Source: Klebsormidium nitens
Lineage: Eukaryota > Plantae > Klebsormidiophyceae
DNA: 64,000 nt
NCBI GenBank assembly: GCA_000708835.1
Contig: DF237020.1
Coordinates: 1-64,000 of the forward strand
Direction of reading: 5' to 3'
In this document: piece after piece, positions 10,405 to 31,100 of the stretch
How positions within the stretch are numbered: position 1 is the stretch's first letter
Layout of the letters: the number at the start of each line of letters is the position of its first letter
Made by a program: the position numbers and the translations under genes
Notes under the pieces: model-generated
The model's database searches: none
Told to the model about the DNA's origin: nothing
Seen by the model: only the letters and a program-made list of their open reading frames with translations

Positions 10405-13400
10405 ATGGATCGCTCGGCAGCCTTCCCCTTGGGAAAGCTTATTCTGATCTCCCTTTGCATTGTTTTATGGGCGCCCCAAAGCGCGGCATGGCTGCCCAAA
10501 ACGGCCCATAAATTCGCCGACGCCCCCCACATTCGCCTGCGCTCCGTGTCTCTCCGAGTGTTGGACCATCCTGAATTGTTACTCGGCAGCGATTCAAATG
10601 TTCGGAGCCACCGGAGCATGATGGAGTCTGTCCGAAGAGAGCTAGCCCAGGCGAATACTACGACGGGGGGGTTCAACAGCAGCGTTTTGGAGCAGCTAGG
10701 GTCGCCCCCAATCCAGGTCATGGTGACGCTCTCGGCAGCGGCCATGCTGCAGCCGGACACTTTTGGGAAGTTGAACGATGCGGCGGGGGCGGTGGATAGT
10801 AGTGTTCTGGGGTACCTGCCGGAGGATTCGTATTTACTATTGTGTCCAAACACGACCGCGGCGAAAAAGATTCAGGCGGCACTGCCGGCGGTGGTGTGGA
10901 TGGGGGTGTATGATCCCAGCCATAAGATGGCCCCCGAATGGATACAGATCAGCCAGTGAGTTGTCTTACCATCGACCCTTCCTCTGTCCTCAGGGAAGGA
11001 TTAGTCGACTGCCTAGTTCATGGTATGAGCTCTGCTGTTTTCCTGTTGCTTTGCCTGTAGAATGTACAGAATGTGATCTTACAAGGAAGTCAGGAACTCT
11101 TGGACATTTTGAGTCCAGGAGGACAGGAAGCAATCTTGGAAAAGCGAGCTGCCGCCCAAGTATTTGCAGAACGGAACGTGGAGAAATCATTAGGGCCAGA
11201 TGCTACATGCCAATAATCTATCAAAAGGTACCGGCCTGGGCAGTTTTTGGAGATACAGAATATCTTGAATGCAACGCCAGAATTGCCACTTGTCACATGT
11301 AAAGACGGACTTTTGGACGCAACCTTAGTGTTTGTGAACAATCATTGAATCAAAGACCGTTGCTTGGAGCTAGTGTCAATAGTGCCAGTCTTTAACGGGT
11401 CTTCTTGTGTTGTAGGGTGGTTACGGGGGGCTCGTCCCCTGTGATGTCAAGCGGGGGGGACGCGGGAGCAGAATCGGTGGCTATCGACGATTTGAGCCGG
11501 GTGCTGATCGACGTGCGCCTGCCAGGAAGTGAGCTTTCAACCCGCCCATTCGTCTGCTGTTATGCCTTCTTTCAAACTAGACATCTGAACGCCGCTAGGA
11601 CGAAGCAACTGAGAGATCAGCATGGGATGATGGCTGCCCAGTGGAGTCGGTGACGTAAGTAGGCGATGGGTCAGCCGTTAGCCAGGGTATCGAAGCCCAC
11701 CGGATCACGGAGAGGTTGCTGCTCGAGGGTGCGCTTTTGCTGCGGACGACGTCCTTACAGCCGGAAGTAGCTGACACGTTGAGAGTCCGGTAAAGGGTGA
11801 GAATGCTCATTATCAAAATTGACAGCAATTGTCACGCTCGTTGAAGAACGGCTGTTAAGTATGAGAACGGTGAACCACGTTGAGCCCCTGTCAAGCTTAT
11901 CGCTCCACCCTACAGGTGTTGCCAGCGGCGCTGACGTCAGTACTGACCTGGCGGGCGCGCTGGCAGCCCAGTGGAACGTCAGCCTCAATGTGTACCTTAA
12001 AGCGAACTGCAAGGGTAACGCCATACCCGCTGTGGTGACGAAAGCAGCACGGGATGTCGTCACGGCGGCCACACCCAGCATGTGCCTCAACGTAAGATTT
12101 CCACGTCTGCTAGAGACTGTACTTACGAAATCTGTTACGATTTTACTACAAAACAGAGGTTTTGTAGTGGGTGTGCGGTGTCCGTCATTGTCGACTTAGC
12201 TCGAACTTGAAGCTAGTGTTGGTCTCTTGATAAGGTTTCTCTGGTTGGGCGGGTTAGCTTTTGGATAAACAAACTGCGAGCAGAACGTCCATAGCTTGAT
12301 AGCCGGTTTTGAGCAATTACTTTGCAGTTCCTCGGCTGCTATGAGACCTGGCTGCACGATCGGCTCAAGTTGACATCCAAAGCCATCGCTCGTCGTCCCC
12401 TCTGCGAGGCGCTCGAGAGTCGGGCCACGAGGTGTTTGATCTGTAACAGAAAACGCTTGCTGAAGCTGCTAAAAGGCCCTGTTACGGCTGTGTTGTTCGC
12501 AGATGGCTGTGGCGTGGCTGGCGGGACAGCCGTGGGCGCACTGGGTGGGGCCTCGTCCCGTGACCCGGTTGCATAACATGTACTCTAGCAGGTGAGCCGG
12601 AGAACCTCCGATAAAGTTTAGCAGTTCACAGAAATGCACGCTCCTTCTCGCCAAGCAAACGGTTCAATCACGGTCATTTTTGCGCGCTAGATAGCTAAGG
12701 ACGCCTCAGCTTTAGCCTCACCGACTTCCAATCCCGATAGAAAGGCTTTTCCTAGGTCGGCGTCCCTGTTTACCAACTCGACTGACAGTCAGTCTGACGA
12801 GTATCGACTGCCAAAAAGCGCAAAGGCACAGCTGCGACGGCGACTCTGCACTCTGCTTCTGACACGTGCCACCTTCTCGTTGGTCTCTGTTCAGCCTCAC
12901 CCAGAGCTCTATGGCTCTGGCCCTCAGCCCCGGCGTTACGGACGGCGTCAGTTACGGCACTGCCCGTCCGGTTTGGGACGCGGGAATCATGGGCCAGAAC
13001 CAGATCGTGGGCATGGGCGACAGCGGAGTCGACTGGAACAGGTACGAGGTCGCCGTCTTACAGCTTTTTTAAACTGCTGCCTATCGATTTATCAGAGACG
13101 CCCAGCACGAAGACCTTTGAGTCGGACCACTTCCACTGAGGAGGGCGTACCGTTTTCTTCAGCAGCACGCCTTATCGATGCAGCCGCGCTTCTTGTTGTT
13201 GGAGCGCTTCTTGTTGTTGGATCGCTTTTCGTCTCTATGAGATTAAAGTTCTAACCCTAGATTTGAGTTCTAACCCTGGCTTCTCTGCCAGACGGCCGCC
13301 TACATTTCCGCCTACATCAGCATGTTATCTGCCTTTTATTATGAATGGGTTGAACGTCATACCCTCACGTTTACGCCTGACGTCTGGCTGTGTTCCCTTG

Positions 13401-16400
13401 CGTTGCAGCTGTTACTTCGTCGACCCAGCCGTTCCGGTTCCGGGCCCAACCCACCGGAAAGTGGTGGGCTACCGGCAGCTCTCCGGAGGCGACAACCTGG
13501 ACGGGGAGGGCCACGGGACCCACGTGTGCGGCAGCATCTGTGGCCAGGTGAAAAGACGCCACATGTCCCTTGCTCGCTCTCAAACCGTTTGATTGTTCCT
13601 GAGACCGCTGCCAGGAAATCTATCAGAGTTGAGTTCAGTTGGTGTCTGTCAGAATCTTCCGTCGCGGAAAAGAGCAGGCGTCAAGAGCCCTTTCGGTAAA
13701 AAATTGCTGCGCCATGGGGAAGAAGAGGGAGACAAGGTTGGCGGTCGAGAGGAGATAAGAGTTTGGAACTCCTTGCAAAGCAGTTCTAATTGACAAGAAC
13801 CGGCGCTGACATACATGGTCAACTCATCTAAACGCACCTGGATTAGTCGACTCCGCGGGTTCTTTCGCCACCGTTAAAACAGTTTGCAGATTGAGTACGA
13901 ACAGAACTCATTGTGCTAGGCCTGCGCGCTTTGTTTGGTACGCTGCCAAGTTGCCGCTTTCGAAACAAGTCGCACGGATTCTGAGAAGTGTCCTCATCTC
14001 CGCGTTGCAGGCGGGCGATCTGACGCCTAGCCAGTACGACGGAATGGCCCCCAAGGCTCGCGTGTTTGTGTCCGATATGGGCACCGGGAACGTGGGCTAC
14101 ATCAACCCGCCCTCCGACCTCAATAACGACTACTTCAAGTGAGCGCCTCCGTTTGAGTGGTCTTGGTTTTAAAGTTGAATGGGCTCATTCTCTTGCCTCA
14201 CAGGACGATGAATCATCCAGAAAAAATGGGAACCAGTTTGCTCGTAGGAGGCTTTTCCCCGGAGCGAACTGCTGTTACGTTACTCATTCTCCGGTTTGAC
14301 GCTTGCTACGACTCACATTCCACTACGTAACATCGAACGGATGAAGAATCAGCGTTTGTCCCCGAAGTAGACTGCTCATAAGCGCTGACCCAATATGCGT
14401 CGCCTAAAAGCTTATGTTCGGTGGGGCAGGTACGCGTACGCGGCCGGCGCGCGCATTCACAGCGACTCGTGGGGCACCTCGGACGCGAGCTACTCGTCCA
14501 TGTCGCAGGACGTCGACCAGTTCACGTGGACCAACCAGGTACGCCCACGTGTCTGCGTTTTTCAAAGCACTCTTGCTGGGCAGCCTTCTCTTCAAATCGC
14601 GGTCCCTTATAGTTAAGTTACGGGGTGGTTGAAGAAAGGAGACAGGGCAAAAAGGAGGAGACTCTGACGGCACGTTCAAGAAGCGAGAGCATGTTGGAGG
14701 CCCGGACAAAACGAGGCGGTCCGGCAACGATCGGATCAGCAGCTGTCCATCGTTTTTTGCACGTGGCCGTTGTTGCTGACGCACTCTCTCTCGATCGTTC
14801 TGAGCGGATGCCCGCACTGAGCAGACTCTGGAACAGGACCACAGCATCCGCATTAAGGCGTGTATAACCATTCACAAGTCCTCCGTTTTTTGGCCCAGCA
14901 ACCGTCTCTTCCCCTAGGAGTCGCTGCTGCTGAGCCCTTCTTCTCTTATCTGATCCTTCTCCCATTTTCCCTCCGCAGGACTTCCTGCCTGTCATTGCGG
15001 CCGGCAACTCCGGCGCCCAGCACAACTACGGGCCGACCATCTACGCACCCGCCACCGCCAAGAACGCACTCACAGGTACGAACCTCCTCCCTTGGCACGC
15101 ACTTTAGAGAGCACGAGTCGCTCCAGGGAAGCACGACCCATGTGCAAGACTAGGTTGTCGACCAAAGCGCAGCTTTCCCTGCAACCATCTTTCAAATCGT
15201 GGACAGCTAGTCCGACAAATGGCAGGCCCGATCACCCGCTGCAGTATGGAACCACTTTTGCCTACGCGAGTGAGCCACTAAGATCCTCTTTTTGAGTCCA
15301 AACACGGTTGTGCGGAAGACCAAAGTCTTGCAAAGTGCATAAACCTAAGCGGATCTGTTACGTGGCTCCTCCAGTGGGCGCCACGTGGGGCCCTTTCGGC
15401 CAGAGCGTATACAAAGACCCCGCCGGCAGCTTCATCATGACCTTTGACTTTTCAAAGCTCGGTCAACTTTCAAAACGCACGCAAACCCATGATCGTGCAA
15501 ACACAGAATCTGAGCAAATCCGTTCGTGGTCCTCCAGTGGGCGCCACGTGGGGCCCCTTCGGCCAGAGCGTGTACAAGGAACCCGCCGGCAGCTTCATCA
15601 TGACCGTTACCGGCCCCGCGCTCGACCTGAACGTCTTCAAGGTGTTCAACTCCGGCTTCGGGACCGACTTCAAGAAGCTGACGTCACCGCTGACGGCGGC
15701 AGCGGCCGTCCCGCAGGACGCGTGCTCCGGGCTGACGAATGCCGCGGCGGTGAAGGGGAAGGTGGTGCTCTTGGACCGGGGCACGTGCCTGTTCTCCGTC
15801 AAGGTGCGTTTGCGTGTTCTTTTTATGGGTTTTTTTTTGAGACTCCATCTAGGAATCATCGCGTTCTGATTTGTGGGCTTTTTCGGGTACTCGATTCTGG
15901 CTTTTAGATTCTAGAGGCAGTCGTTCGGGCACCTTTGAGTCGAACGAGGGTTGAATCGGAACTCCGTCCGGCCGTTGATTTGTTCAACACTGTGCTGACT
16001 AGAGTATTGTAGAGTCCGTTGATGTGTTTTGTCGACCTGGACGTGATAGTTGAAGTCAAGCACTTACATCGAGTAATTTCCGCCAAACTGATCTCCCACA
16101 TCATTATCGTAATCTGAACCCCTTCAACTTGTCTGGCAGCAGTCTGAACGTTGTTCGTAACCTCTTCGCTGCTGCAGATCCAAAATGCCCAGACCGCGGG
16201 TGCGGCCGCGGTGCTCATCATGAACACGGACGCATTCCCACCGGGCTACTTCTCCATGAGCGCCGGCACGGCCGCTGGCAGTGTGAATATCCCCGCGGGG
16301 TCGCTGCCCAAGGCGATCGGCGCTATACTGTACGCAGCGCTCAAGGGAAAGACGGCAGTACAGCTCTCGTTTGCGGTGGTGAGTGGGGAAATCGAGTTTT

Positions 16401-19400
16401 GAATGCATAAGCGATGCGCCAGCGCTAAGTAATCAAGCGCTGTCTTTCATAACATCGCTTTCGACAGTGCTTTTACTTGAAGAAACGAATAGTACGGGAA
16501 TAGGTGGACCCGGATCCCTGCTTGTCTGAATCTGGATTTCTTTGATCATGATCATCTATTTGTCAAATTGCTTAATGAAGTCCTTGTTGAGACTCTTAAC
16601 CGCAGGCCTTCTCTTGAGTAGCCCGCTTGCACAAAGCCTGCCTTTGACGAGGTCTCCTTTCCTTTGTATGTTCGACGTCGAATCGAAGGCCTTGTTTCGC
16701 TCCTCGCAGGATTCTCGCACCGATGCGCGATACGACAACGTCGCGAGCTTCAGCAGCGTGGGGCCCACACAAGACGGGCGGATCAAGCCGGAGATTACGT
16801 CCCCCGGTAAGGCTGTTTTATGTGTGCACCTTTAGCTGCCGGCAGACGTCTTCTCCGAGCTCCATTTTTGGGAAGGGGACACGGAAGAGCGCATCTTTGA
16901 CGTCATAACCTGCCGCCTCAAGATTGAAACATACTCCATTCTGCTTTGCACTTCTGCTTTTGCGCTTGGTTGAGGATAATAAATCTTGGTCCAAAGTAAT
17001 TGCAGAGTCAGCGCGCTGCAAGAATCGGAGCGATACTGGAATAGAGACTGGTACCAGGTCCTTTCCGTTACGTGCCAAATCGACCTTGATGCCAAGAAAA
17101 ATATCTAACAGTCAAAGGAACTCGCAGAAACGGCACGTGCTGTTTCCAAAGTGACGGCGATGCACCATATTTGAAGTCCTGCCCTCCTGATCTAGGCAAG
17201 CAGATCTGGAGATTTATGCAAGATGTGCTGACGTCCTGCTCCCGTGCAGGCGACACGGTGCGTTCCGCCAAGAGTTCCGGCCTGCTCAACGACCAGACGT
17301 GCAGCCAGGCGACGATGTCGGGAACTAGTATGGCGACGCCCATCACCGCGGGCTCCGCCGCGCTCGTGCGCCAGTACTACACCGACGGCTGGTACCCAAC
17401 CGGGAAAGCGGTACGCACCAAGGATTTGTGTCGCATTGGTGGACGATTTTGGTGGAAACGAGTCTGCCGGGAGCCTGTCACAAACAGGATATCATATGAG
17501 CGCGTCTTACATGGGTTACCAGTGCACCGAAGGAACGAGTTTGACGTTTGGAGATTGGCAGATTCTGTGCTTTTCAGCCTCTCAAGATCTTGAGACCATG
17601 AACCTGAAGCATACTGGCTTCAAAGACAGCCGACATCATTCACTTGCTTATCCTCCTTCATGAAGGGCCCCGCGTATGATTCAAGTATGATTCAAGTATG
17701 ATTCAAGTATGATTCTTCTTATTTTGGAGTTCTTACTGAGTCTCCGCGCAAGGGCAGGGAAGTCTCCATCATTTCCCCAGTCTGAAGCAGTCTGTGCTTG
17801 CGTGTAGACCCCCTCCAACCGGTTCCAGCCTAGCGGCGCTCTGGTGAAGGCGACTCTGATCAACGGAGCTGCGCTGATGGGCGGAGTAACCGGCGACGGG
17901 TGGCCGATCGACCTGCCGCCGTCAATGACGCAGGTCCGGCACCCGCTGACGTCACCATAGCACTTCTTCTTGAGATCCGATCTTCACCAGGAGCCCGTTC
18001 GGTTTCGCTTCTGGTTTTGAGTATTTCGGCAGTCTGGGCCATTCACAGAGCCTGTTCTCCGTCGGTGCATACAAAGCAGAGAGACATTTTCCAAAATTCC
18101 GCGAGAGTTTCTCACATTCGACGGTTCCGCTGAGTGTAGTCTGGAGCGATGCTACCGTCAGCAGTTCTGACAGTATCGCTTACGTGTCTTGCGACCTACT
18201 TGGGTTTCAGATCACACGCGAACGATCCTTTCGGATTGGTGGATTTGTTTGCGGAACTGATGCAGCAGCCTGTCGGATTTGGGGCAACGTTTGAATCATT
18301 GACCCACTTGTCTTACATAGTTGAACCCATTCCAGCTGGTTCTGACGTCTCTTTGCGCATTGCACAGGGCTTCGGACGAACGTTTTTGGCCAACAGCCTG
18401 AAGCTGCCCAACACGGCCTGGAGCATGTTCGTGCGCAACGGGACGTCCGTGCAGACCAGCAGCGGGCAGCGCTACTGCGTCTCGGTTGGGGCAAACAGCG
18501 GCGACCTCAAAGTCACGCTCGTCTGGTGAGGTCGCCGGGAAACGCCAAAGAAATGAGATTGGAGGAAGAATTTCAGTGCTAGCAGACTTGTGCCAACACC
18601 TCACTGCTAGAGTTTGTGGAGGCGAAAGGTATGCGTCGCACGGGAGTTGATCCGGTCCCCTCGTCAGGAGATGCTAGACTGAGACTGGAAGAACAAGGAG
18701 CAACTTTTGTAATTGAAGTTTGTGTTGGCGGGCTCTCTGTGACTCTGACACGTGTGTGACCAAAGTAACAAGGATCAAATCGGCAAGATGCGGTGCGGAG
18801 GACAGACCTGGAACTTGCTTCCCGGAATGGTGAAAGCAACTTAAGTCAACCACGACCCGAGGAGAGTGACGGAATCTGCTGACGTGTGCAGGCACGACGC
18901 GCCCGCCCTGCTGACCGCGAGCACGGTCCTCGTGAACGATCTCGACCTGGTGGTGACGTCACCTTCGGGGCGGGTATTCCTGGGCAACGGTCAAGCCGAC
19001 CGCATGAACAACGTCGAGCAGGTATGGAGACGCGACAAGGGCATGCCTTTGACTTTGCAAAGGAAACGCCAGCCAAGCCGTAAACCTGCTGTAACCACAC
19101 GATTTGTTCGTTACGAAAAGGAAGCTCACAATCTTGTTCTAAGATCCCTGACTTTTGTTACATCGCCCTTCAATCCATGCTAAAGCTAACGCCAAATCCA
19201 CCGTACCTACGTTAGGCCGGCGACCTTATCATTCTCAACGCTTACTATCGTTCCAGGATTATTCAGAGGCTCTCCGTAATGATTCTGTCCCCGCACACTG
19301 CCGCCGTTTGCTTGTTCGCAGGTCTGGGTGCGCACCCCCGAACAGGGCGTCTACTTTTTGGACGTGAACGGTTACAAGGTGCCCATCGGCAAGACCGGCC

Positions 19401-22400
19401 AGCCCTTCGCTCTAGTTGCCAGAGGCCCGCTCAAGGAGGTGGCGTGCTACGGTACGTGCCCTTGCCTTTTCTGGTTGCACTGTCTGCCGCCCCAACCCTG
19501 CAAGCCGCCGAATCTTTGTCGAAGAGCACGAACAGTCAAGTTGCAGAGTGAAGGCATAACTTGATGAGGAGTCTGCGTTCCCGTTCAGCAGGCGTCTCAA
19601 AGAGACGGTCTCCTGTCGATGCTGGTTAGAAACTCCTCTGCCAGCATCTCTTCCCTTTTTTCGTACACAGAAGCGCTCTCTTTTCTGGGTATACCTCGTG
19701 ATCATAACCCTGCTTGGATTCAAAACAATTCAGCCCTCCGCACTCGGAAAACTTCCAAACCTAGCCGCACTAAACCACTTTGTAACTTGCGACCAACCCA
19801 CGCCCATTCCTACCGCCTCTTTCCAGACGCCCACGTGAGCGGCGGCCCCTCCGGCTTCACCAACAACCGCAGCCCCGTGTTTTACATCAGCGCGACCGCG
19901 GGCGCCAATCTGGTGCTCCAGTGTCGCCTGCAGTGCACCCCGAGCAGCTCCTCGTGCTTCGCCTGGAAGACGTGCACTTCTCCAGTCACGCTCAAGAGCC
20001 TCCCGGATGCGGCCTACACATTCTCCGTCCAGGTAATGACTTTGGCCTCCTTAACCGTGAGGGATTTCCGGGGTTAGGTGGGGGTTTGATGCGGTATTCT
20101 GGGAGGCAACGAACCGGTCGGCGTTGATTTGGAATGCGTCTCCAGCGGGACGAGTCGGCGGCGGGCGCTCTTGCGAGAAACGGAGGTTTGGGTCTATAGA
20201 GGTTCAGATCGAACTGCGTTGCCAAAAATTAAAACTCTGCCCGGGGGGTTTCGGGGTTATGCTCGCAAGACCTTGATTGATGCGCGTGTTTGCCATTTTA
20301 AAGCACGAAGAAAGGTCCGTCTCTATGGCAAATTCGGCATAAGAGTTTTTTCCTCTGTATTAATTACTTTCCTACGCTACCCCACCGTTTACATTTGAGA
20401 GTACGCACTATCACGTCAAGGGCTCCATCGCCCACTGCGTCTTCCGCTCCAATTAGTGGGAGAGCTGACCATCCGTTTGTGACTGTAAACCTGTGACCCC
20501 TAGCAGCTGGTGCTATAACCATCCAAATGCTTACTCATGGAAGCCGAGCACCTTAAGAAGTCGTATTCGTCATCAAACCCTGTCCTTCCTTCTTGGCAGA
20601 TAATCGACACCAAGTACGGCATGCAGAGCACGCCCAGCTCCCAAACCTTCACGGTCCTAACCAAACCCCCCTCAACCACGCTGATGTCTTCCGACGCGCC
20701 CTCCAACGCTGCGACTGCGACTTTCACGTTCACCTCCCCCTCTGCCAACGTGGCATCGTACCAGTGCCAGCTCAACGGTACGAACCTTCGTGCTCCACCC
20801 GCCGATATCGGTACCGTCGTGAGCCAAGAGGGGCGGTCAGACTTAACCCATGGCTGGCAGCCTTGCTTTACCCCGGAGACGTACCAAGGGCAGTTCGACG
20901 GCGATTATATATTCTCAGTGCGGGCAGTCGACCTTGCGGGGAACGTCGATCCGAAGCCGCCCACCTTCTCCTGGAGTGTGAATACGCTCCAACCGAGCGC
21001 CAAGATCACGCAAGCGCCGGGGCTGTACACCAACAACTCCAGCCCAGTGTTCGCATTCACACTGAGCAAGGCCCCTGGGATCACCCCCGGGGTACCAGAG
21101 TGGAACTGCCGCTTGACTCCGGGAGACCCGGGCGCGTTTCAGAAGCTGACGTCATCCGAAGGAGTGGACGGGGAAGAGGCGCAGGCCGCGGCTGCCGCGG
21201 TTAGGCTCGCGCAGGGTTTGGTTATGGGCGGGGTTAATCCTAACCTGCACGACTGGGCGCCCTGTAAGTCCCCGGTGAACTTCACCGGCCTCCCCGACGG
21301 GGCCTATGCGTTCAGCGTCCGGGCGATTGACACTCAGGGCGCCAATGGACTCAGCAATGCCTCTGCGACCGTCGACTTCAGTGTCAACACCGTGCCGCCC
21401 CGCACGGCAGTCCTCTCGCAGCCGCCGGCCCTGGCAGCTGCCACGTCAGCCGCCTTCTACTTCATAAGCTCGGAGCCGGTGACATACTTATGCGAGCTGC
21501 GGTCAGCTTATGCGGTGGATCAAACGCAGTCCAAGTACAACCAGACGGCGACCATTGTCTACTCGTGGAGGGCTTGTTTGTCGCCCATATCTTTCCTGGG
21601 ACTCCAAGATGGATCGTACACTCTCCTTATCCAAGCGACGGATCTGGCCGGAAATGGGGGCGCAACGATGCCGCTCGTATTCGGTCTTGATTCGACGGCG
21701 CCCACTCAGACTATCACGTCGGCCACGGTGCAGACTGGCACACTTCTGGTGAGACTCGACGCCGAAACCTTTGCAAGTAAGCTGCGTGGTGGCAGCGAGG
21801 GCGATGCTGCTGTTCCTACTGCCTGCAGTCTCTAAGGATTCAAAAGAAGGACTGGAATGGACTTCGATTTCGTGGAGCACTTTCTCCAGCTTTCAGTTCT
21901 ATTCCTCTTTGACGAGGATTCCTCGCAGACCGGGAGTTCGAAGCAGAAAGTCTACCCTTTTCTCTTCTAGCCTTCATTCCCGTAAAACAAATACGTGCCA
22001 TTCATTCCTATTGTCAAGCCTCATCATAACCAATATTCACCATCTTCTGTTATGCCAACTGCGATGTTCAAACAAGCCCCAAGCCCCCGAAACCCCCAAA
22101 CCCTTTGTTTCAGGCGACCTTCTCCGGCGCCGACGGCGCGCGCGGCTCCGGGGTGGTGAGCTTCCAGTGCCGGTTAGTCCAAACCGGCCGCACAGCGCCC
22201 GGGTTTACCCCGTGCACGTCTCCGAGCACTTACAGCAACCTGTTCTGGGGGCAGTACAACTTCCAGGTCAAGGCGGTGGATGCCGCCGGGAACGTCGCGG
22301 GTTCGCCCGACGAGTACAACTTCACCATCGCAAACGCCGGCGTTTCCGGGCAGGTGAGAGGGTTCGCATTCAGTTTTGGACGACCTTGAAAATGGCTCCT

Positions 22401-25400
22401 CCTCTTTTGATGTCCCGCTTCGAAAGTCGACTGCAGATCAGGCGCTCTCAAAGCCTTTCGGGTGCTGACGACAAGAGCCCACAAGACGGCAACAGCTTCT
22501 GGTTACAGTTATGATCTGTCTTGTCGGGATGAATATCCTTCGCATTCCCCGTCACCTAGCTGCACGGATGTGCACGGTCCGCGTTTGCCTGATGCGCTGG
22601 ATACCCTGCAGAGCACTCGCACCTTTGTATTGGTCACGGTCCGTTGGATTTTAGATTTGACGCCACGTGTCCTCCCCAGGTCGTCTCCTGGATGCGCGCG
22701 CCCTTCCCCGCCAAGATCTCCAGCCGCACCGCGGCCGCAATCGCGTTCGACGCGAGCGGCGCCGACGGGCTGACGCCGACGCCAAACCTCGGGGGTTTCG
22801 AGTGCAGCCTGGACTCGGGGAGCGTGCTCGCGTGCACGAGCCCCCGGTTCTTCAACATGCTGTCGGAAGGAGAGCACGTCTTCCGAGTGAGAGGCAAGGA
22901 TACAAAGGGGGCGGCCGGGCCGTGGAATGGGTACAGCTGGATCGTAGGTGAGGGATTGAGAGAAGATGGACTCTGGGCTTTCTTCTGGGCTTTCTATGCT
23001 ACCATTGCATAGCTATGGATTCTGGACTTTCTTTCCATTCCATTGCTATAATCACTCCATAGCTATAATCAACCCATAGCTGGACCGCAGGTGAGGTTTG
23101 AGGGGATTAGAGTTCTGGGCTCTAAGTCGGTAACTTAGTACTCTGAGTCCATCCGGTAATTTAGTACCCCTGGATCTGATTACAGAATCCAGTACATTAA
23201 TAAGGATCCGAGGCTTTTGAGTCCAGAACCAAGAATCGTCTAGGGGCCTTCTTGAGTGTTTCAATGATTCACGGGTACAGTATATTGTTGGCTTGTCACC
23301 TGCGTTCAAACGTGTGCCAGGTATGCGGTATCATGTTTTCTTAACCAGCATCAGAACGTGACCTGGACAAATGCGGATATGAAAGGCCAAACTTTGAACG
23401 CGCATCGACAAGAGGGCTTTCTTCAGTTGCGACATAAGAGCCTTCTGCTAGCAGCTCTTAGCTGACATAAGAGGCCTTTTGCTAGCGGCTCTTACCGGAT
23501 TAGAATCGAGTCTCGTTAATTTCGCGGCAAAACACCCTCAGCTCACTGCCAATCTCTCCTCTTCGCAGACACGCAAGCGCCTTCAACGGCCATCACGAGT
23601 CCAAAGTCACTGGTCCTGAACACGATCAGTCCAGTCTTCACGCTTTCCGGTGACGACGGAGCCACCGGAACCGGAATCGACCACTTTGAGTGCAAGCTGG
23701 AAGCCCAAGGGCAGGTCGTTGGCGACCCTTCCGCCGCGGAATCCGTCAGCAACTCGACCGGAATGCTGGTCAACTGGAAGCTGCACGACTGGCAGGCGTG
23801 CGGCGTGTCAACGTCGTTCCAGCAGCTGCCGAACGGGCTCTACAGGTACGCGCACTCACTTGACGAAACAGGGTCTGTGCGCTGGAGAGCTGAAATGTCT
23901 TGCGTCCTGGGCCATCCGAAATATCGATTCCTGAAGTTTGGATGTCGGTGTCTGATCAGATCCTCTTTAGGTCTTTGAGAGACGGGAAAGCATTTCCAGA
24001 ACTACTTCTTTCCGAGCCTTTCATTTCGGACATGTGGAGTCGAATTTCACGCTTGTCCCCCGGTGCGATCATAAACAGGCCCGCCCACCCCAACATCCTG
24101 TGAATCTTTACAATTATTCTTTTGGCGGCCTTACGAGGCCATTGATATATCAGCCTCCAAAACCCCTAACCCATGCCCCGTGCCAGGTTCTCCGCGCGCG
24201 CGGTGGACGAGGCGGGCAACGCGGACCCGAGCCCCGACTTCCGCGACTTCTTGGTGAACAAGTGGGTCGTCGAGCTGGAGGCCTTCTCCGCGAGCAGCAG
24301 CCCGCTCGTGCTGCCGCCCTCGTCGGACGTCGTCCAGTGCGACCAGGGAGCGCGTACGTCCGCACACGCCCTGCGCTTCTAAGCTTTTAGCTTTTCTTGA
24401 CCACCTATTTGGGGTTCTAGGGTTTAGCGTTCCCTGTTTGCTTCCATGAGAATATGGGGGAGGGTATCGCAGATCTGTTCAGGATTTCGTGCCGAAATTT
24501 CATCCGTGGACGTCACCAGAAGGATGCACTCACTATGGGACGTTGATGCTCCTTTTTCGACTGTTTAATTTCATCGCTGTAAGGGCCAAACGCTTCGAGC
24601 CGCACCAGGAGAACGAAGAAATTGCTCCTTTCCACTGTATCCTGAAAGTGGGCTGTTTAACAGACGTGCTCCGAGCTCCATAGTGTAGGGATGTCTAAAT
24701 CAAGTAATGACCTTCTTTCCAGTACTATTGCTCGACCGGATTTCTCAACCTCTTGTCATTTATCCACAGCGAGCTGCCAATTCACGGTCGGACTGGACGG
24801 TGCTGCCGTCAGCGCCTTCGGCGGCCGCGTCATCGCGCTGTTCCCGGGATCGCCCTCTGCGACGTTCCCCAGGTGAGCCGCCACCTGTCCAAAATCCGGA
24901 CGATGGATACCGCTTGCAGCTGTTCCGTACGGCGGCTCGAGCGTCATGCTGACGTCAGTACGTGCATTTTTGAAGCACCGGTGTCCACAGCCAGAGTTAT
25001 GGGCTGCCAAGAATCGAAAGAACAGACGTTGGTATAAGCGAAAAAGACGAGGGTTTGCGACTTGTTCTGAGGGTTGCTTGTCGCTCTCCGCTCGTTCAAT
25101 TGCTTCAACTTTGCCACATGTCTATGATGCTGTTGCCGCGCACTACATCCGCTTTCAGCCATTTCGACCCGGACATGGGTCGCTTCTCCGTTGAATCGAC
25201 AATAGCCCGGGCTTTTGAACCCCGAGCTTTTTGGCCCGCTTCACAAACCGCTCACCGTACGCAGTTTATGCCTGGATCGCAGAGCATTCAAATCCGACAC
25301 CCGCAACATCATGAAGCTCAAAATCGTAGAGCCGCAAAAGATTCAGATTTGAATTCGCTATTTCCCGCATTTCGCCCCGCAGCTTCTCCCTGAGCAGCGG

Positions 25401-27975
25401 CAGCGGCGCCCTTCTCGCGAACACCATCAGCGCGTCGCTCGGGCCGGGGCAGCCCCCGCAGCAGTTCAGCCTGCTCTCCCGGGTGGTCGCCATCCAGTCT
25501 ACCGACCAGTCGACCGCAGTCCTGTCCGCGCCGGGGCTGCTCATGCTGCAGTACTCGGGGGACGCGGCCGCGCAGGCCAGGAGGCGCGCGCGCGCGCTGC
25601 TGGGTACGTTGGTCGCGGATCCCTTTTTGCGACCCTGAGACGACGAACTTGGTGATAGGATCCTCGCGACCTGTGAATGGTTTCAGTAGTATCGTGTAAG
25701 GCCTCTAAACTCTTGAACTCATGAATCCTGGACAGATATAGTGGATCGAACTTGCTGATCACGGCTGACGGTTGTCTCGTGGCGCCACAAAGAAGCAATC
25801 GCTACGATCAGTGCCTTCGAAAAAACTTGGCCTCCCGCAGGCCTCAGCGTTCAGTCGGAACCTCCTGAGAGCTTCAATGTCACTTAGATCACCGAAGACC
25901 TGAACGCCAAACAGCTTCTCTCCATCTCTTCGCCACAATCCGGAACTTTCTGAGCATCTTACAAAGCTTCAAACGTTGTGAAAGATCACCAACTTTTCCG
26001 CTCTCTCTCCACAGCAACCGGAAACGCAACGGACGGCCCCCCGGGGGTGCTTCTCTTCAACCCTGACCTGTCTGTGGGCAGTACTGCCAGCTGGCAGCAG
26101 GTGGCGAGCAGCGTGATCGTCACGTTCGAGGACGGCTACTGCACCGCCCAGGTGAAGGACCTGGGGAACTACGCCGTGGCGACGCTCTACGTCGGTGAGT
26201 GCATAATTCTCAAGAAAGATAACAATAAGCCCCGATAGCAATAAGCTCCGATAAGTCTGAAACCCTAACCTAGAAAGATGCCTGCTCCGCCCCCATACCC
26301 ACCCTAACCACCAAAGTAACTCTACCCGTCCCAGTGCGGTTACCCTATCATTATCTCGGCTTATCATTGTCTTTCTTGAGTCTCATGTCGAGTACCCGGG
26401 AGACGCCAACCGGCCGGTCTGCAAACATGCGGTTCTGCGAGACTTTGTGTGGCGTCCACATGATTGGAGGGAAACCGGCCTACTCACCATCTCAGGTTGT
26501 TCAGATTCCCGCAAAAGTGTGTGATGGGCGGAAGAGAGTGCGGAGCGTCGAAGTTTTGAAACAGGCTTTAGTTTGCCAGGAGAAAGCCTTCTGCCCGGTT
26601 AGAGAGCCGCCTCTGTGAATGCGAATCTCTACACGTTCCCCAAAATGGGCGCACTCTCTCAAAGCAATTCTTCTTTTCGTTAATCCGCCGGCATCCCGAA
26701 GGTCAGTTTCTGCCAACTTTATCAAACTGACGGAGTCCATCCCACCCCCCTCCTGCAGCGCCTCCCGTTTCAGGTTTCATACCTTCGGACCCCACCCCCA
26801 GCCCGACGCCGACTCCCCCCCTCATCGTGCCCATCTACCAGCCCCCCCCCAGCGCAAACGAGTCCACGCCGGCCACTGTCATGTCGGCTTCCGTCGGAGG
26901 GGGTTCAATAATCCTGTACGTCATCATCTCTGTTGTGGCGATTGCACTAGCGACAGGTGAGGCCCCGCTTCCGTCCGCAAATGCGTGCGCTTTATCAAAT
27001 GTTTATGTGCTTTTACCCCTTTGCATACATACGACGGAGCTTGTCGCGTCTATCGTGAACCCTCCCGCTGAAACTCTTCCCATTTCGCAGCGAGCCCTTG
27101 AACGGTTACAATAGTCCGAGATGATAGCTAGTTTCAATCCTGACACCAGGCCTTTTCAAACTTCGCGCAGGCGGGTTGCGTGCTGATAAGAAGCGGCGGC
27201 ACCTTCTTGAAAAACTTCCAACATTATCTTTGAAAAGCTACACCATATCGGAAAGAGAACCACCTCCAAATTCTTGACACCAAAATTTTTTACACCCCGT
27301 GCAGGTGTCGCGGGTTGCGTGCTGGTGTGCAAGCGGCGGCAGCCCAGCAAGGCCGTGTCCATGTTCGCCCCCAAGGCGCCCGCGTTTGCGGACACGCCCA
27401 ACGACAGTCCGCGGTCCGCGCAGCCGATGCGCCGCCGCAAGAGCCGCAAGTCAGGGACGCACTTCGAGTTGCCGCAGGACTCGCCGGGGGGTAAGAAACA
27501 GCGCGCTGCATCTTTGCTCTGTTATTGATTCCGAGGAGACTCCCTCGTTCTCCATGTTTTGCAACGTCATTCTTGTTGTGTTCCTGCTGGTAATCCACTT
27601 TCGTCGTTGCTTCCAATAAATGGCCGCAAGAGGCTTTCCAGATTAGTTGTTTTGGCTGGGGAAGAGAGGGCGAAGGACCCCAAAGTACGTCTCTTTGATT
27701 TGGGCGGACTCATCAACCGCCAATGTTAAGTCCTGAACGCAGCGACCACTGGTTTTCCAGGTTCTCTTCCGGGTACACCCCGAGGGCGACGCTTCTCGTC
27801 CGGCCCAGAGCTGGCACGGTCGCCGCTTTCCGTCGGTTCGATAAGAAAGTCGTTCACAGACAAGGTCCGCAAGATCAGCATGTCCGTCATGGGTCGCTCG
27901 GATGAGGTCATGCATACGCAATACGAGGACCTAGAAACAGTCGACCTAGAAGGCACCACGCCGACAGGGCAATGA
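10405..27975 (+). CDS. Type I membrane S8 subtilase (KP-43/TagA-like) with PA domain, C-terminal beta domain, 7 Ig-like repeats, TM helix and cytoplasmic tail; 29 exons, ~2070 aa
   Basis: Exons: 10405-10955, 11416-11528, 11916-12091, 12503-12591, 12895-13041, 13409-13547, 14011-14138, 14430-14538, 14979-15075, 15538-15803, 16178-16378, 16710-16806, 17250-17410, 17808-17933, 18368-18525, 18892-19021, 19322-19451, 19827-20032, 20600-21748, 22114-22353, 22680-22947, 23569-23845, 24187-24353, 24770-24872, 25383-25603, 26015-26194, 26774-26956, 27305-27490, 27761-27975 (6213 nt, one open frame). Signal peptide KLILISLCIVLWAPQSAA. Catalytic triad intact: Asp in IVGMGDSG (13019), His in GHGTHVCG (13512), Ser in SGTSMATP (17327); oxyanion Asn in IAAGNSG (15006). 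KP-43-type motifs ARIHSDSWG, AKNALTVGA, SFSSVGPTQDGRIKP, PSGALVKATLING, QGFGR, LVNDLDL, NNVEQV. The choice of exons 2-4 (prodomain) is less certain. Confidence 0.92.
15361..15442 (+). repeat. Intronic duplicate of the subtilase exon-10 acceptor plus the first 68 exon nt
   Basis: 15361-15442 (cgtggctcctccag|tgggcgccacg...atcatgacc) matches ~15525-15605, with 4 differences in the exon-like part. Confidence 0.95.
17674..17715. repeat. Short tandem repeat (GTATGATTCAA) x3.8 in subtilase intron 13
   Basis: Read directly from the sequence. Confidence 0.95.
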
Positions 27976-28177: not shown

Positions 28178-31100
28178 CTAGAAGTCTAGAGCTTTCTGAC
28201 TGTATGCTTCATCCATAGACTTCTCGTCGGAGTCAACGTTCCGGATAGGGCCATTGTAGTGCTTACGGGCACTTACAAACCACCATACCAGAATGACAAG
28301 TCCAAAACCTCCTCCTGTAACCGGCGTGTAGTTGAAAGTCGCGCTGCGGTCAACATGGAGGTGATTGCGTGAATATCTTTGCAATGTTAGATGACCGTCC
28401 AAGGCAGATTTGCACCTGATATTTCTGCCCTAGAAGGTTCCAAATCAACCGACGCCAGCAAAGTAGTCGCATCCTGAGGGTTCCATTTGCGCGAGTCCCA
28501 CTTATGTGAGCATTTTGAATTAGGTCATGTGCATTCACAAAAACTATGTGGTTTCGGCCTGCATAGACTGCACTTATAGCAAGTAACATGCCGTGTTGCC
28601 CTCGGGGTTACATTGAATCGCAACTACGACGTTTTGCTTGCCTCACCTGTTGATCGGGTAACTGAAGGGCAGGCAAAGAGCGACCAGCATGAATAACATA
28701 TACACCACCGCGATCCAACCAACGATGTAAGTATACCTGCAAAAGACGCGAGCATGTGTTCCGATCTGCTTAGTCACTAGGAGCTCATCTTCATTTAGCT
28801 ACAGCATCATTTGCCATGCGTTGCAAACGGAAGCAATGGTTGGCCAAATTTCTGTCCAATATCTTTCATGCTATAAAAAAGAAAAAGCCGCGCGCACTAC
28901 GCGATTACCAGCATACGACTCGACTCTTTCATGTAGAAGACTTACCGCCCCATGTTGAATGGCCCTGGCTTGAAGTTTTGCGGGCACACTAAGCGGAGGC
29001 AGATCGGGACGATGTAGGCCACGTGGAAGGAGATTGACCCACACGTGGTCACAGCATTGAAAGCAATGACACTCTTCAGCGAGAAGAGCGCAAAGCAGAA
29101 GGAGAGCAGGGAGGAGATCCACACGGCCGCGACAGGAGTGTGCGAGCCCTTCGGAGACCAGTGCACGAAGCCGCTGAAAGGAACGGCCTTGTCACGGGAC
29201 ATGGCGAATAGCTGCAAAAGCAGAGGCTCTCTGTCGGTTGCAGGTTGCGACAGTTGTGCTACATGAACAAGTCGTTATTTTATGCGTGTTCTGATCGATC
29301 CGCGTTCCTATGACGCAGTATCATGTGCATCAAGCGATGCAACAGTCTGATCGCAAAATATTCGGCTGATGAGCTTGCGTGGCAAACGTGATCTGCCTTC
29401 CACAGAGTCCACAGGGTTTTCACATTGTCAATTCTAGGCTGAGGCGATTGAGAGAAGGCGTGTCTACTAGGTTGCGTCATTTGCGACGCTGAGTCCTTCT
29501 TGAACGACGACAATCAACTCGAAGTGACCCATTTCGGTTTGACAACACTTGCAGAAAGAGAAGACTTACCACCCGAGAGCAGGCTGCTATCTGAGGTACT
29601 CCACTACAGCAAGCGGTGACGAGGGGAATCGTCAGCAAGGCAATTGCACCATTGTAGCTCCGGCCTTTGCTTAAGAACGCGTCATAAAAGATCTGCCCGA
29701 CCACGCTTCGACCAGCCGTTGCGTTCTGAGGATCTAATATGGTGGCAGGATCCTGCGGCAATAGAACATGACAGTCAAGAAAACAAGTCTTGCTTCAAGA
29801 TCAACAGCGTCCTGCTCTTTGAATCAATCCTAGTGCTCAGACTATCTTATAATGCGCGATTCATGAGGACGACTTACGAGGACTTTTGTCAAACTCAGCG
29901 GGACTGTTGGATGCAGTGTCAAACGCAGCCTCAAATGCTACTACCCAGCGGCTGCTGGTGTGCCAGATGACGCGACACCTTAGGAAAAGTAAGCTTTAGG
30001 AATAGTAAGCTCAAATCAAACACTGAAATCCTATCCTATAGAAATCACCCGCTCCGCACCCGTACCCACCTTAACCCCCAGACTAACCCTAGCCGTCCCA
30101 GGCTGGTGAGCTTACTATTCCTAAAGCTTACTATTCCTAAAGTATCATGAAATGTGTGCCAGCTGTACCGACCTGGATACAGAACGTGAGGACAATGATG
30201 AAGATCCAGCCAAAGAAGCCCGCCGCTCCGACTGCGCTGATGATGGAGACGGGGGTGGTGACGTCCGAACCGACCGTCTCTTCGGACATGTGCACCGCAG
30301 CCTGCATCACACGACGGGCTTCTGTAGCGCTTGAAAATGGGGCAAACTTCCCCCAAGGAACTTCTGGCGGGTCGATCCAAAGGCCGTGTTAGTTACGCAT
30401 GTAGGAAGAAGATGTGCATGGCCGGGCATTCGTTGCAATTTCGGCGACAGAGAACGCAGTTTGTCGCTGACACGGTTCTTGAGATTTGACATGAGAATCG
30501 ACATCTGAACGAAGCTACATTTCTGTTGTCAAAGCAGAAGTGAGCAGAAAGCAACCACAAATTCCTACTTCAAGTTTGTCGTATACTCGTAGTCATCCTA
30601 TTATGTAACTTGAAGTTGGCTCTTAAGTTCGAAAGCTTACGTCGTAGGCCCCAATTGACCATTGGGCCAGCAGCGAGCCAATCAACAAGACACGAAAGAC
30701 ATTGTCGATGCCTGTGCCCGCTGCAGGTTCGTAGTGAGTGAAGACGTACTTGGCCGATTGCTTGTGTGCTGTGCGGGCAAAAAGACAGATTGTCAAAGTC
30801 AAGGTCCAACATGTCGCTACAGTGAAAGGTTAAAGTCCCTCTGTTCCTCACGGTGCCAACAGACGGGTTGAGCTCGACTTTCGGAGCGGCCGTAGAGTTC
30901 CAACAGTAAAATACGATTGCATGCCATTACACCAAGCGGCCAGAAAACGGCGAGAACCTTTCAGATTGTCAATGGGCATGGCAGACAAGCCAAGGCGGGC
31001 GTTTTTACTGACAGTTCTAGACCTACTTAACATGAAGATGCACTAAGCTCTCCAGCCAAACTCGCCGCTAGCACTTATCTAGCAGTTAAGCGCTAACCTT

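Follow-up and report, generated by a model that had tools for sequence, protein, structure and literature searches.

A putative membrane-tethered KP-43-type subtilase with a PA insert and seven Ig-like repeats in the streptophyte alga Klebsormidium nitens

The locus at positions 10405 to 27975 (+ strand) of the window, by which we mean the whole 64,000-nucleotide stretch of Klebsormidium nitens DNA that was analysed, raises the question of whether a protease, an Ig-like array and a membrane anchor belong to one gene, and what such a protein might do. A sequence-only reading had proposed a single gene of about 2070 aa. A splice-aware dynamic-programming model, made independently, started at 10405 and stopped at 27975, and the final model, for which RNA joints and orthologue conservation then served as corrections, agrees with the proposal, with 29 exons and 2070 codons plus the stop. 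Exons 1-8 lie on the + strand at 10405-10955, 11416-11528, 11916-12091, 12503-12591, 12895-13041, 13409-13547, 14011-14138 and 14430-14538; exons 9-16 at 14979-15075, 15538-15803, 16178-16378, 16710-16806, 17250-17410, 17808-17933, 18368-18525 and 18892-19021; exons 17-23 at 19322-19451, 19827-20032, 20600-21748, 22114-22353, 22680-22947, 23569-23845 and 24187-24353; and exons 24-29 at 24770-24872, 25383-25603, 26015-26194, 26774-26956, 27305-27490 and 27761-27975. RNA contigs placed the exon 18 donor at 20032, not at the model's 20056, and lacked the duplicated pseudo-exon of the first model (15375-15461), 15075 being joined directly to 15538. The last exon was taken to start at 27761 rather than 27860 because 33 extra codons are kept in frame in the orthologue; conservation thus makes 27761 the probable acceptor.

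To decide whether neighbouring protease and Ig/TM genes had been misjoined, or a decaying pseudogene misread, we relied on RNA contigs from four runs of four studies and on related algae. All ten splice joints within 15075-20600 were present as GT..AG in single RNA contigs of 5.6-7.4 kb, and in all four studies single spliced contigs bridged the protease and Ig exons. These contigs exclude the possibility, raised with the original proposal, that the protease and Ig/TM halves are separate genes, and a gene-fusion artefact is refuted for 14979-20900. Two of the contigs extend 3274 and 3280 nt beyond 20900, which fits the remaining 2888 nt of coding sequence and about 390 nt of UTR. These lengths, together with orthologue conservation, suggest that the transcript continues 3' of 20900 through the TM and tail exons. 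The spliced coding sequence of 6213 nt contains no in-frame stop. Orthologous contigs of related algae carry all 29 exons in the same order and under purifying selection; the gene is 80% identical to its orthologue, with a dS of 0.95 and a dN/dS of 0.13, and every domain has a dN/dS between 0.05 and 0.19. Judged from these alignments, the gene is real and constrained over its whole length. After testing, nothing spoke for an artefact, the first automatic model having had three local errors, and we give this explanation almost no weight. It is probable that the locus is one expressed gene, with one mRNA, for a type I membrane-anchored subtilase zymogen.

The signal peptide and long prodomain that had been proposed were both recovered at the N-terminus. 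The putative signal peptide (aa 1-27; 10405..10485, + strand) gives a Kyte-Doolittle peak at aa 3-30 with a hydrophobic core at aa 9-22, and cleavage would follow the AxA-like QSA; Met1 and the hydrophobic core are kept in two related sequences (L003 and L004). The propeptide region, of about 300 aa, spans exons 1-5 from aa 28 to a probable end near aa 330 (10486..12955, + strand). Within it, the AF2 model of exon 1 (pLDDT about 80) predicts an I9-like beta-alpha-beta-beta-alpha-beta module at aa 100-183 (10702-10953, + strand). This model aligned to the propeptides of subtilisin, PCSK9 and Tk-SP with Z of 7.1-7.6 (VIA-align), and it reached an equal Z (7-8) with unrelated ferredoxin-like folds. 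Pfam I9 matched none of the gene's exons. An I9 reading of exon 1 is compatible with the model, and unproven.

The S8 catalytic domain, located by Pfam Peptidase_S8 pieces and by motifs, occupies aa 331-800 (12956..17933, + strand) and is split by the PA insert. D352 (codon 13019-13021) stands in GDSGVD, H394 (13512-13514) in HGTH, the oxyanion N494 (15006-15008) in AAGNSG and S731 (17327-17329) in GTSMATP. The triad is therefore intact, as had been claimed, and its Asp-His-Ser order with the oxyanion Asn in canonical motifs places the protein in Peptidase_S8 (PF00082); the presence of all catalytic residues suggests that the enzyme is catalytically competent. Peptidase_S8 pieces fall on exons 6, 8, 12 and 13, collinear along the profile, and exon 13 alone scored 29.6 bits against a cut-off of 21.8. 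In sequence searches of the PDB, exon 8 matched only KP-43 (1WMD) and SubHal (5FAX), and the same two chains ranked top for exon 12. With exon 13, KP-43 was tied with other subtilisins (savinase, MCP-01), C5a peptidase being one of the weak S8 matches, and exon 6 showed a weak preference for other subtilisins, not KP-43. Judged exon by exon, the catalytic scaffold appears to be of the KP-43 type.

The PA insert (aa 520-682, exons 10-12; 15546..16739, + strand) is flanked by AKNALTVGA (aa 511) and VASFSSVGP (aa 683), the two strings between which it had been placed, and so lies after the oxyanion Asn and before the catalytic Ser. Its two halves are encoded on the adjacent exons 10 and 11. One matches positions 3-44 of the Pfam profile PF02225 with 27.4 bits, the other positions 42-94 with 25.6 bits; both exceed the cut-off of 23.9, and together they account for the full profile. 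A sequence search of the PDB with the PA exons and exon 14 gave no usable match, and a word search with a PA exon returned three close relatives only.

Directly after the catalytic domain, and split over four exons, PDB sequence matches point to a KP-43-type C-terminal beta domain (aa 801-946, exons 15-18; 18368..19846, + strand). In agreement with the KP-43-style domain read from the sequence, exon 16 matched only 1WMD residues 353-386 (E 5e-7) and SubHal 5FAX, and the sole matches of exon 17 were the same two chains, weak and collinear (1WMD 402-428). KP-43 and SubHal were the best or exclusive, collinear matches of exons 8, 12, 16 and 17. The beta domain has the lowest dN/dS of the protein (0.049). 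Bacillus KP-43, in contrast, is a 434-residue secreted enzyme without PA insert, Ig array, TM helix or tail.

The next part of the protein consists of seven Big_13-type Ig-like repeats (19847..24271, + strand), located with a repeat HMM built from 2716 bacterial repeat instances, Pfam Big_13, AF2 and Foldseek. They correspond to aa 947-1039, 1037-1147, 1149-1282, 1284-1383, 1381-1475, 1482-1572 and 1576-1681, the third carrying an Ala-rich helical insert. The proposed number of seven was upheld by the repeat HMM, and exon 19 scored 40.4 bits with Pfam Big_13 (PF19077; cut-off 27). The AF2 model of exon 19 (pLDDT 79.7) is all-beta, with tandem beta sandwiches, and in Foldseek it matched FnIII arrays and the SiiE BIg domains 2YN3/2YN5; Big_13 Atlas clusters gave a score of 0.95. 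Profile, Ig-like fold and tandem arrangement agree in assigning the repeats to Big_13. An exhaustive search over representative proteins with exon 19, the largest (383 aa), returned 10,559 proteins, of which the best 150 were all multi-repeat proteins with 32-42% identity. None of these 150 shared the protease or the tail, so that the search yielded no full-length relative.

Big_13 arrays are rod-like stalks of bacterial surface proteins, and Periscope or Big_13 stalk proteins, such as SiiE, project an N-terminal functional head from the cell (PMC9704523). The tandem, predicted all-beta array of the algal protein resembles these. However, the repeats of Periscope proteins are by definition nearly identical and differ in number from strain to strain, whereas the seven repeats here have diverged to 29-47% pairwise identity and their exons pair one-to-one with those of the orthologue L001, whose gene model was curated by hand; membership of the Periscope group was therefore rejected.

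For a comparison with prokaryotes, a motif scan yielded 119 KP-43-type ORFs with the GARIH..WG motif, a biased sample. The N part of the catalytic domain was matched in 117 of the 119 and the C-terminal beta domain in 100, and the PA insert was found in none of this biased set. The motif spacing differs as well: GARIH and the Ser motif are 275 aa apart in the algal protein, as compared to 108-218 aa in 95 of 96 prokaryotic ORFs. Ig-like C-terminal tails were frequent among the 119, and Big_13-type repeats occurred in five, with one or two each in those listed. In five Ig-tailed ORFs (L101, L092, L069, L035 and L036) the S8 domain is followed by a PPC-like beta domain and a run of Ig folds, as it is here; their Ig folds are Big_7, PKD and fn3, with Big_13 below the Pfam cut-off in one. 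Prokaryotic proteases of this kind reach up to 2145 aa, but have neither a PA insert nor a eukaryotic-type TM helix and cytoplasmic tail. A search of prokaryotic genomes with the exon-16 alignment, using over-specific patterns of 8-9 aa, confirmed nothing.

Between the repeats and the membrane lies a juxtamembrane region of about 200 aa (aa 1682-1885; 24272..26799, + strand), whose exons gave no Pfam or NCBIfam match (NCBIfam: sub-threshold only) and which had no counterpart in the 119 prokaryotic ORFs. It is 76.5% identical to that of the orthologue (dN/dS 0.18). Both orthologues keep a multibasic RRRAR (aa 1809-1813; 25579-25593, + strand) with (A/T)LL after it, in a loop that is otherwise less conserved and lies some 105 aa from the membrane on its outer side. 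A Pro/Thr/Ser-rich spacer (aa 1886-1917; 26800..26895, + strand; about 50% P+T+S), also conserved in the orthologue, leads to the TM helix (aa 1918-1946; 26896..27330, + strand), whose coding sequence is divided by an intron between exons 27 and 28. This helix is the only internal 19-aa window with a Kyte-Doolittle value above 1.6; it is followed by KRR and conserved in L001. The combination of a signal peptide with a single TM helix and KRR points to type I topology. The Pro/Thr stalk, single TM helix and tail of about 130 aa that had been proposed were thus located, the spacer being short (about 32 aa) and the tail 124 aa long.

The putative cytoplasmic tail (aa 1947-2070; 27331..27972, + strand) was defined from motifs and orthologue comparison, and has a dN/dS of 0.147. 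Its proximal 30 aa are 43% and its distal 94 aa 89% identical to the orthologue. The distal part contains RRKS, the 14-3-3-like RRFSSGP (27787-27807, + strand), RKSF, RKIS and YEDL, a YxxPhi motif (27922-27933, + strand) with an acidic end after it; the tail also has a basic, NLS-like RRRKSRK. These motifs are short and could have arisen by chance. Exons 28-29 matched no Pfam family and contain no kinase, TIR, death or other signalling domain. A word search with the tail exon, among proteins of 38-122 aa only, returned zero candidates, a blank that says little. The sequence-only reading had envisaged a protease held off the membrane on an Ig stalk with a signalling tail. Its first part is supported by the type I topology, with the head distal on the Ig-like array. 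The second part fared less well, since the tail has no known domain, and its conservation and short motifs could reflect trafficking or phospho-regulation just as much as signalling.

In lactocepin PrtP and the streptococcal C5a peptidase ScpA, a PA domain interrupts the subtilase head between oxyanion Asn and Ser; several Ig/Fn3-like domains follow, then a Pro/Thr-rich wall spacer, and a C-terminal anchor keeps the enzyme on the producing cell. The algal protein resembles such Gram-positive cell-envelope proteinases in overall layout, an analogy, but differs in having a TM helix and tail instead of LPXTG, a KP-43-type catalytic domain and a Big_13 rather than Fn3 stalk. In land-plant SBT proteases, the PA domain lies between a TVGA strand and an FSS.GP motif. 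The PA insert site, and possibly the I9-like propeptide fold, are common to the algal protein and to SBT1-5 (I9, S8/PA and Fn3-like), which are secreted, lack a TM helix and belong to a different S8A cluster. Membership of SBT1-5 was rejected on the basis of the TM anchor, catalytic pieces nearest to KP-43 and the lack of a Pfam I9 or Fn3-like match. Xu et al. 2019 (PMC6713707) report that the SBT1-5 cluster is absent from earlier-diverging streptophyte algae, the group of Klebsormidium, and they define a 'KP43 proteinase' cluster to which sequences of Klebsormidium, Chara, Ectocarpus and Cyanophora belong. In Chlamydomonas, seven of 21 large S8 proteins are membrane-bound, with 1100-1800 aa and one TM helix (PMC6313938). 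VLE1/sporangin and five others are type II, with an N-terminal anchor, the single type I protein being S1P-like; VLE1/sporangin is stored membrane-bound, becomes soluble after cleavage and digests the mother-cell wall (PMC6313938). A PA and Big_13 architecture is not reported for these proteases, which we compared by description (PMC6313938). The background given with the original proposal, on plant as against KP-43-like S8 proteases, was therefore incomplete: the algal KP43 cluster and the membrane-bound S8 proteases were known, and prokaryotic KP-43-type proteases with Ig arrays are common. We found no paper on the full architecture, so that the concern that it might be an already characterised, widespread family did not materialize.

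Taken as a whole, the explanation that we favor, and hold to be probable, is a tethered KP-43-type subtilase zymogen that acts near the producing cell and is regulated through its tail. The propeptide would serve as folding chaperone and inhibitor and later be removed. The active head would then be held some tens of nanometres off the plasma membrane on the Ig-like rod, in the periplasmic space or inner wall, where it might cleave wall or secreted proteins near the producing cell, a display that resembles, by analogy, that of bacterial surface proteins and cell-envelope proteinases. The PA domain, beside the active site, may limit the substrates accepted. Where and when the enzyme is displayed could be governed by the distal tail, through candidate basophilic-kinase sites (RRKS, RRFS, RKSF and RKIS), the 14-3-3-type RRFSSGP, and the YxxPhi motif with acidic residues after it. 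Shedding might take place at RRRAR, which lies close to the outer side of the membrane. We counted VLE1/sporangin, the green-algal precedent for a membrane-anchored subtilase, in favor of this explanation. Wall remodelling, filament fragmentation and peptide processing, the roles suggested earlier, are speculation.

The candidate shedding site also admits a different emphasis, in which the membrane form serves for delivery or latency and cleavage at RRRAR/ALL releases the protease, along with its Ig array, to the wall or the medium, as for VLE1/sporangin by analogy; the cleaver might be the enzyme itself, an S1P-type convertase or another protease. Conservation of RRRAR-(A/T)LL in both orthologues inside the less conserved loop is in accord with this, as is the change of VLE1 from a membrane-bound to a soluble form (PMC6313938). 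However, a disposable anchor would need no tail of which the distal 94 aa are so conserved, and shedding could equally follow the tethered state, which makes it less a competing explanation than a subsequent stage of the favored one. We consider a released-protease precursor unlikely, if still the most serious of the competitors.

It is less likely again that the enzyme is a furin- or S1P-like processing protease that cycles between TGN, endosome and surface and cleaves secretory precursors within the pathway, the Ig array being a spacer or substrate-docking region. The sorting code of furin consists of YxxL and an acidic cluster, which the end of the algal tail recalls. YEDL with its acidic run would fit a TGN/endosome-resident enzyme equally well, several phosphorylatable basic sites precede it, and type I topology is common to furin and S1P. 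Lumenal convertases are not known to carry a seven-domain rod, juxtamembrane domain and Pro/Thr spacer, which we count against this explanation. Furthermore, the catalytic domain appears to be of the KP-43 and not the kexin/S1P type; P_proprotein (PF01483) matched no exon and the PDB matches are S8A enzymes, so that membership of the kexin/furin convertases (S8B) was rejected. A true receptor or wall-integrity sensor, in which a ligand or RRRAR shedding would lead to intramembrane cleavage or phosphorylation-dependent tail signalling, is a long shot. The distal tail has been conserved as strongly as the catalytic domain, and the conserved juxtamembrane multibasic site, the NLS-like RRRKSRK and the 14-3-3-like motif would each suit such a role. 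Yet the tail offers no recognisable signalling domain, only short motifs and conservation, its search among short proteins found zero homologues, and the readings of the motifs are drawn from short patterns; a receptor-like protein with a recognisable signalling domain was thus rejected. Equally improbable is the fuller version of this idea, that an early-diverging streptophyte has assembled a protease-headed surface sensor out of bacterial-type modules; wall or ligand status would control RRRAR cleavage and the tail would relay inward, in a Notch-like or wall-integrity pathway, via phosphorylation-dependent partners or intramembrane release. In a milder part of it, the PA insert of the KP-43 scaffold may have been gained independently of the land-plant SBT PA domain.

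Land-plant SBT1-5 are thought to be bacterial in origin and to have been acquired after the Klebsormidium lineage split. Our results indicate that a PA-bearing subtilase already exists in an alga of an earlier-diverging streptophyte lineage, apparently on a KP-43 scaffold and tethered via a bacterial-type Ig rod. Although the domain mix is unusual and unstudied, tethered proteases are already known, and the gene represents a variant of them rather than a novel type of system; current views are not overturned, since membrane-bound algal subtilases and algal KP43-type domains have already been catalogued. The gene is an expressed, conserved candidate for the processing of wall proteins or signal proteins on the surface of early-streptophyte cells, and may represent eukaryotic reuse of prokaryotic surface-protein modules. 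Regulation could be approached experimentally through its tail, which is unusually conserved.

Intron 9 contains an unused pseudo-exon (15342..15461, + strand), a duplicate of the 3' splice site and first ~72 nt of exon 10. This intron is 462 nt long here and about 240 nt in L001, which leaves no space there for the extra copy. In the window, 15342-15445 and 15507-15608 are about 88% identical.

The window consists of eukaryotic coding DNA interrupted by many introns, and the subtilase gene was modelled by splice-aware dynamic programming trained on the obvious coding ORFs. The model returned a plus-strand gene with its start ATG at 10405 and its stop at 27975, reproducing exactly both limits proposed in the sequence-only reading. 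Sampled words of 14900-20900 were present in public runs of several studies at a level of 26-29%, which is close to the exonic share of ~32%. Four runs from four studies, whose RNA origin was a guess, were placed on 14901-20900, and their contigs lacked GT..AG introns, indicating that they represent transcripts. Each run provided a single contig of 5.6-7.4 kb containing ten GT..AG joints: 15075/15538, 15803/16178, 16378/16710, 16806/17250, 17410/17808, 17933/18368, 18525/18892, 19021/19322, 19451/19827 and 20032/20600. Single RNA contigs thus carry the last protease exons together with the first Ig exons, which settles the question of whether the two halves are separate genes in favor of one gene. 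An 87-nt "exon" at 15375-15461 was skipped in the RNA contigs and was removed from the model, and the same contigs placed the end of exon 18 at 20032. Because 33 codons upstream of the first-choice start of the last exon are kept in frame in the orthologue, this exon begins at 27761. The final protein is 2070 aa long.

Beyond 20900 the RNA evidence is indirect: two contigs from different studies extend by 3274 and 3280 nt, lengths consistent with the 2888 nt of CDS still to come and a 3' UTR of ~390 nt. The other two contigs, from runs X5 and X9, continue for 1.2-1.7 kb more, probably because they are merged with a convergent, permease-like gene whose 3' end probably overlaps that of the subtilase gene. 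This gene lies on the minus strand at 28178-33030 and ends ~200 nt past the subtilase stop codon; its ORF pieces resemble an amino-acid/polyamine permease of the APC type.

With the largest ORF as query, a word search identified two close relatives that share 87% and 77% identity with it, both of which are ORF calls on genomic contigs. Loci L001 and L003 are parts of one 36.7-kb metagenome contig. L004 comes from another contig of that sample, and L002 is a Logan contig. All 29 exons were found in order in L001 and L003 together, with 55-92% identity per tblastn match, and exons 1-19 were present in L004, up to the limit of the retrieved sequence. A Raf1_N (Rubisco accumulation factor) gene is located upstream of the subtilase gene in L003 (5614-5775), in L004 (4635-4796) and in the window (4967-8508), and the neighborhood is therefore syntenic. 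The subtilase locus exists in two different versions on the two contigs of this metagenome sample. Comparison with the L001 orthologue over 1825 aligned codons gave 80.4% identity, a dS of 0.95 and a dN/dS of 0.134. By region, dN/dS was 0.049 for the KP-43-type domain, 0.076 and 0.12 for the catalytic N and C parts, 0.135 for the Ig array, 0.147 for the tail, 0.152 for PA, 0.177 for the juxtamembrane region and about 0.19 for the spacer plus TM helix. These values show that the gene is real, intact and constrained along its full length.

Every part of the observed architecture that had been read from the sequence was confirmed. Database searches used the exons of the spliced model one at a time, and the joined protein was compared only with the retrieved sequences. 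The signal peptide occupies aa 1-27 and aligns, together with Met1, with the orthologues, and the long prodomain corresponds to a propeptide region reaching ~aa 330, in which exon-by-exon Pfam searches gave no I9 match. An AF2 model of exon 1 folded aa 100-183 as beta-alpha-beta-beta-alpha-beta (pLDDT ~80) and aligned at Z 7.1-7.6 to the propeptides of subtilisin, PCSK9 and Tk-SP; because unrelated ferredoxin-like folds score equally, the modelled module is only compatible with an I9-like module. The triad is intact (D352, H394, S731), with N494, in canonical motifs. Against the PDB, exon 8 matched only KP-43 (1WMD 118-151) and SubHal, these two ranked top for exon 12 (KP-43 200-223), and KP-43 tied with other subtilisins for exon 13. 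The KP-43-style C-terminal beta domain was recovered in exon 16, which matched only KP-43 353-386 (E 5e-7) and SubHal, and in exon 17, whose sole matches were weak ones at KP-43 402-428. The KP-43 matches are collinear. In the stretch corresponding to KP-43 151-200 the algal protein is longer by ~150 residues, which form the PA insert; exons 10 and 11 each matched half of the PA profile above threshold, and together they give a complete domain.

The seven predicted Ig-like repeats were located within aa 947-1681 by an HMM trained on 2716 repeat instances from retrieved prokaryote-like proteins; the third contains an Ala-rich insert. They share 29-47% pairwise identity and are assigned by Pfam to Big_13, and the Atlas clusters nearest to them consist of bacterial Big_13 proteins. 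For exon 19, AF2 predicted a string of beta sandwiches (pLDDT 79.7), which matched FnIII arrays and BIg domains from the SiiE adhesin. The juxtamembrane region that follows (aa 1682-1885) gave no family match in exon-by-exon profile searches; it is conserved, and its multibasic RRRAR is kept in the orthologue. The Pro/Thr stalk proved to be a 32-aa Pro/Thr/Ser-rich spacer just before the TM helix (aa 1918-1946), which is the sole internal hydrophobic helix and is followed by KRR.

The tail, estimated earlier at ~130 aa, is 124 aa long. It matched no Pfam family, and a word search restricted by protein length found no relatives. Identity between orthologues is 43% over its first 30 residues and 89%, as high as in the catalytic domain, over its last 94, which carry RRKS, RRFSSGP, RKSF, RKIS, and YEDL with acidic residues after it. 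We take these motifs to be compatible with sites for basophilic kinases, with the 14-3-3 consensus RX[F/Y]XpSXP and with a YxxPhi sorting signal. As a reading of short patterns, this supports a regulated tail rather than demonstrating the signalling role attributed to it.

Prokaryotic genomes were scanned for the motif GARIH[ST][DN][ST]WG, yielding a sample of at least 120 loci, from which 119 ORFs were compared. Among the matches listed, the alga's catalytic N part was matched by 117 of the 119 ORFs and its KP-43-type domain by 100, Big_13-type repeats occurred in five, and the PA insert and juxtamembrane region were matched by none. The distance from the GARIH-type motif to the catalytic Ser motif was 108-218 aa in 95 of the 96 measurable ORFs among the matches listed, and is 275 aa in the alga. 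Only L036 fell outside this prokaryotic range, at 325 aa, and it had no Pfam PA domain. Pfam analysis of seven prokaryotic ORFs of up to 2145 aa revealed S8 and PPC, then Big_7, PKD, fn3 or sub-threshold Big_13. A KP-43 core with an Ig-like tail is thus an ordinary prokaryotic design. The algal protein stands out by its PA insert, its juxtamembrane region and its eukaryotic parts, namely the signal peptide, TM helix and tail. Among the matches listed, such KP-43-type GARIH..WG genes (L005, L011, L034, L040, L060, L062, L082 and others) were frequent in marine Poseidoniales (MGII) archaea and in genomes of Thermoanaerobaculia, Bdellovibrionota and Anaerolineae.

Gram-positive cell-envelope proteinases show the same order of parts as the algal subtilase: a subtilase with a PA domain is followed by Ig/Fn3-like domains, a spacer in the wall and an anchor. 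Our literature search found no publication describing a membrane-anchored subtilase with this architecture. A KP43 cluster of S8A was already defined by Xu et al. 2019, with members in Klebsormidium nitens, Chara, Ectocarpus and Cyanophora, and the same authors report SBT1-5 as absent from the earlier-diverging streptophyte algae (PMC6713707); the N-terminus of our subtilase is not among the rows of their table that were compared. Of the 21 S8 proteins recorded for Chlamydomonas, six are membrane proteins of type II and one, which is S1P-like, is of type I; the 21 include the wall-digesting VLE1/sporangin, which is shed (PMC6313938). In bacterial surface proteins, Big_13 arrays hold heads off the cell (PMC9704523).

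The best-supported reading is a membrane-anchored zymogen with its head held on an Ig rod. The zymogen would enter the secretory pathway, mature by propeptide loss and remain anchored, its catalytic head kept off the bilayer by the seven Ig-like domains, the juxtamembrane domain and the spacer, which is probably glycosylated. Shedding at RRRAR and control of trafficking through the tail are plausible additions. Possible rival readings are an endomembrane, furin-like life of the enzyme and a true receptor function. The interpretation originally proposed, a cell-surface protease on an Ig stalk with a signalling tail, is partly supported.

At 15342-15461, intron 9 contains a ~104-nt duplicate of the first ~72 nt of exon 10 together with the 3' splice site; the duplicate, ~88% identical to the original, forms the in-frame 87-nt pseudo-exon that transcripts leave out, and intron 9 of the L001 orthologue is too short for this copy. 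A separate low-depth 237-nt contig from run X1 at 18566-18802 lies wholly within intron 15, which suggests trace unspliced RNA or intron retention. By our count, the X5 and X9 contigs both start at the exon 4/5 junction (12895), and the X1 contig starts near the exon 1/2 junction (~11416); these starts may reflect alternative upstream forms that break the assembly.
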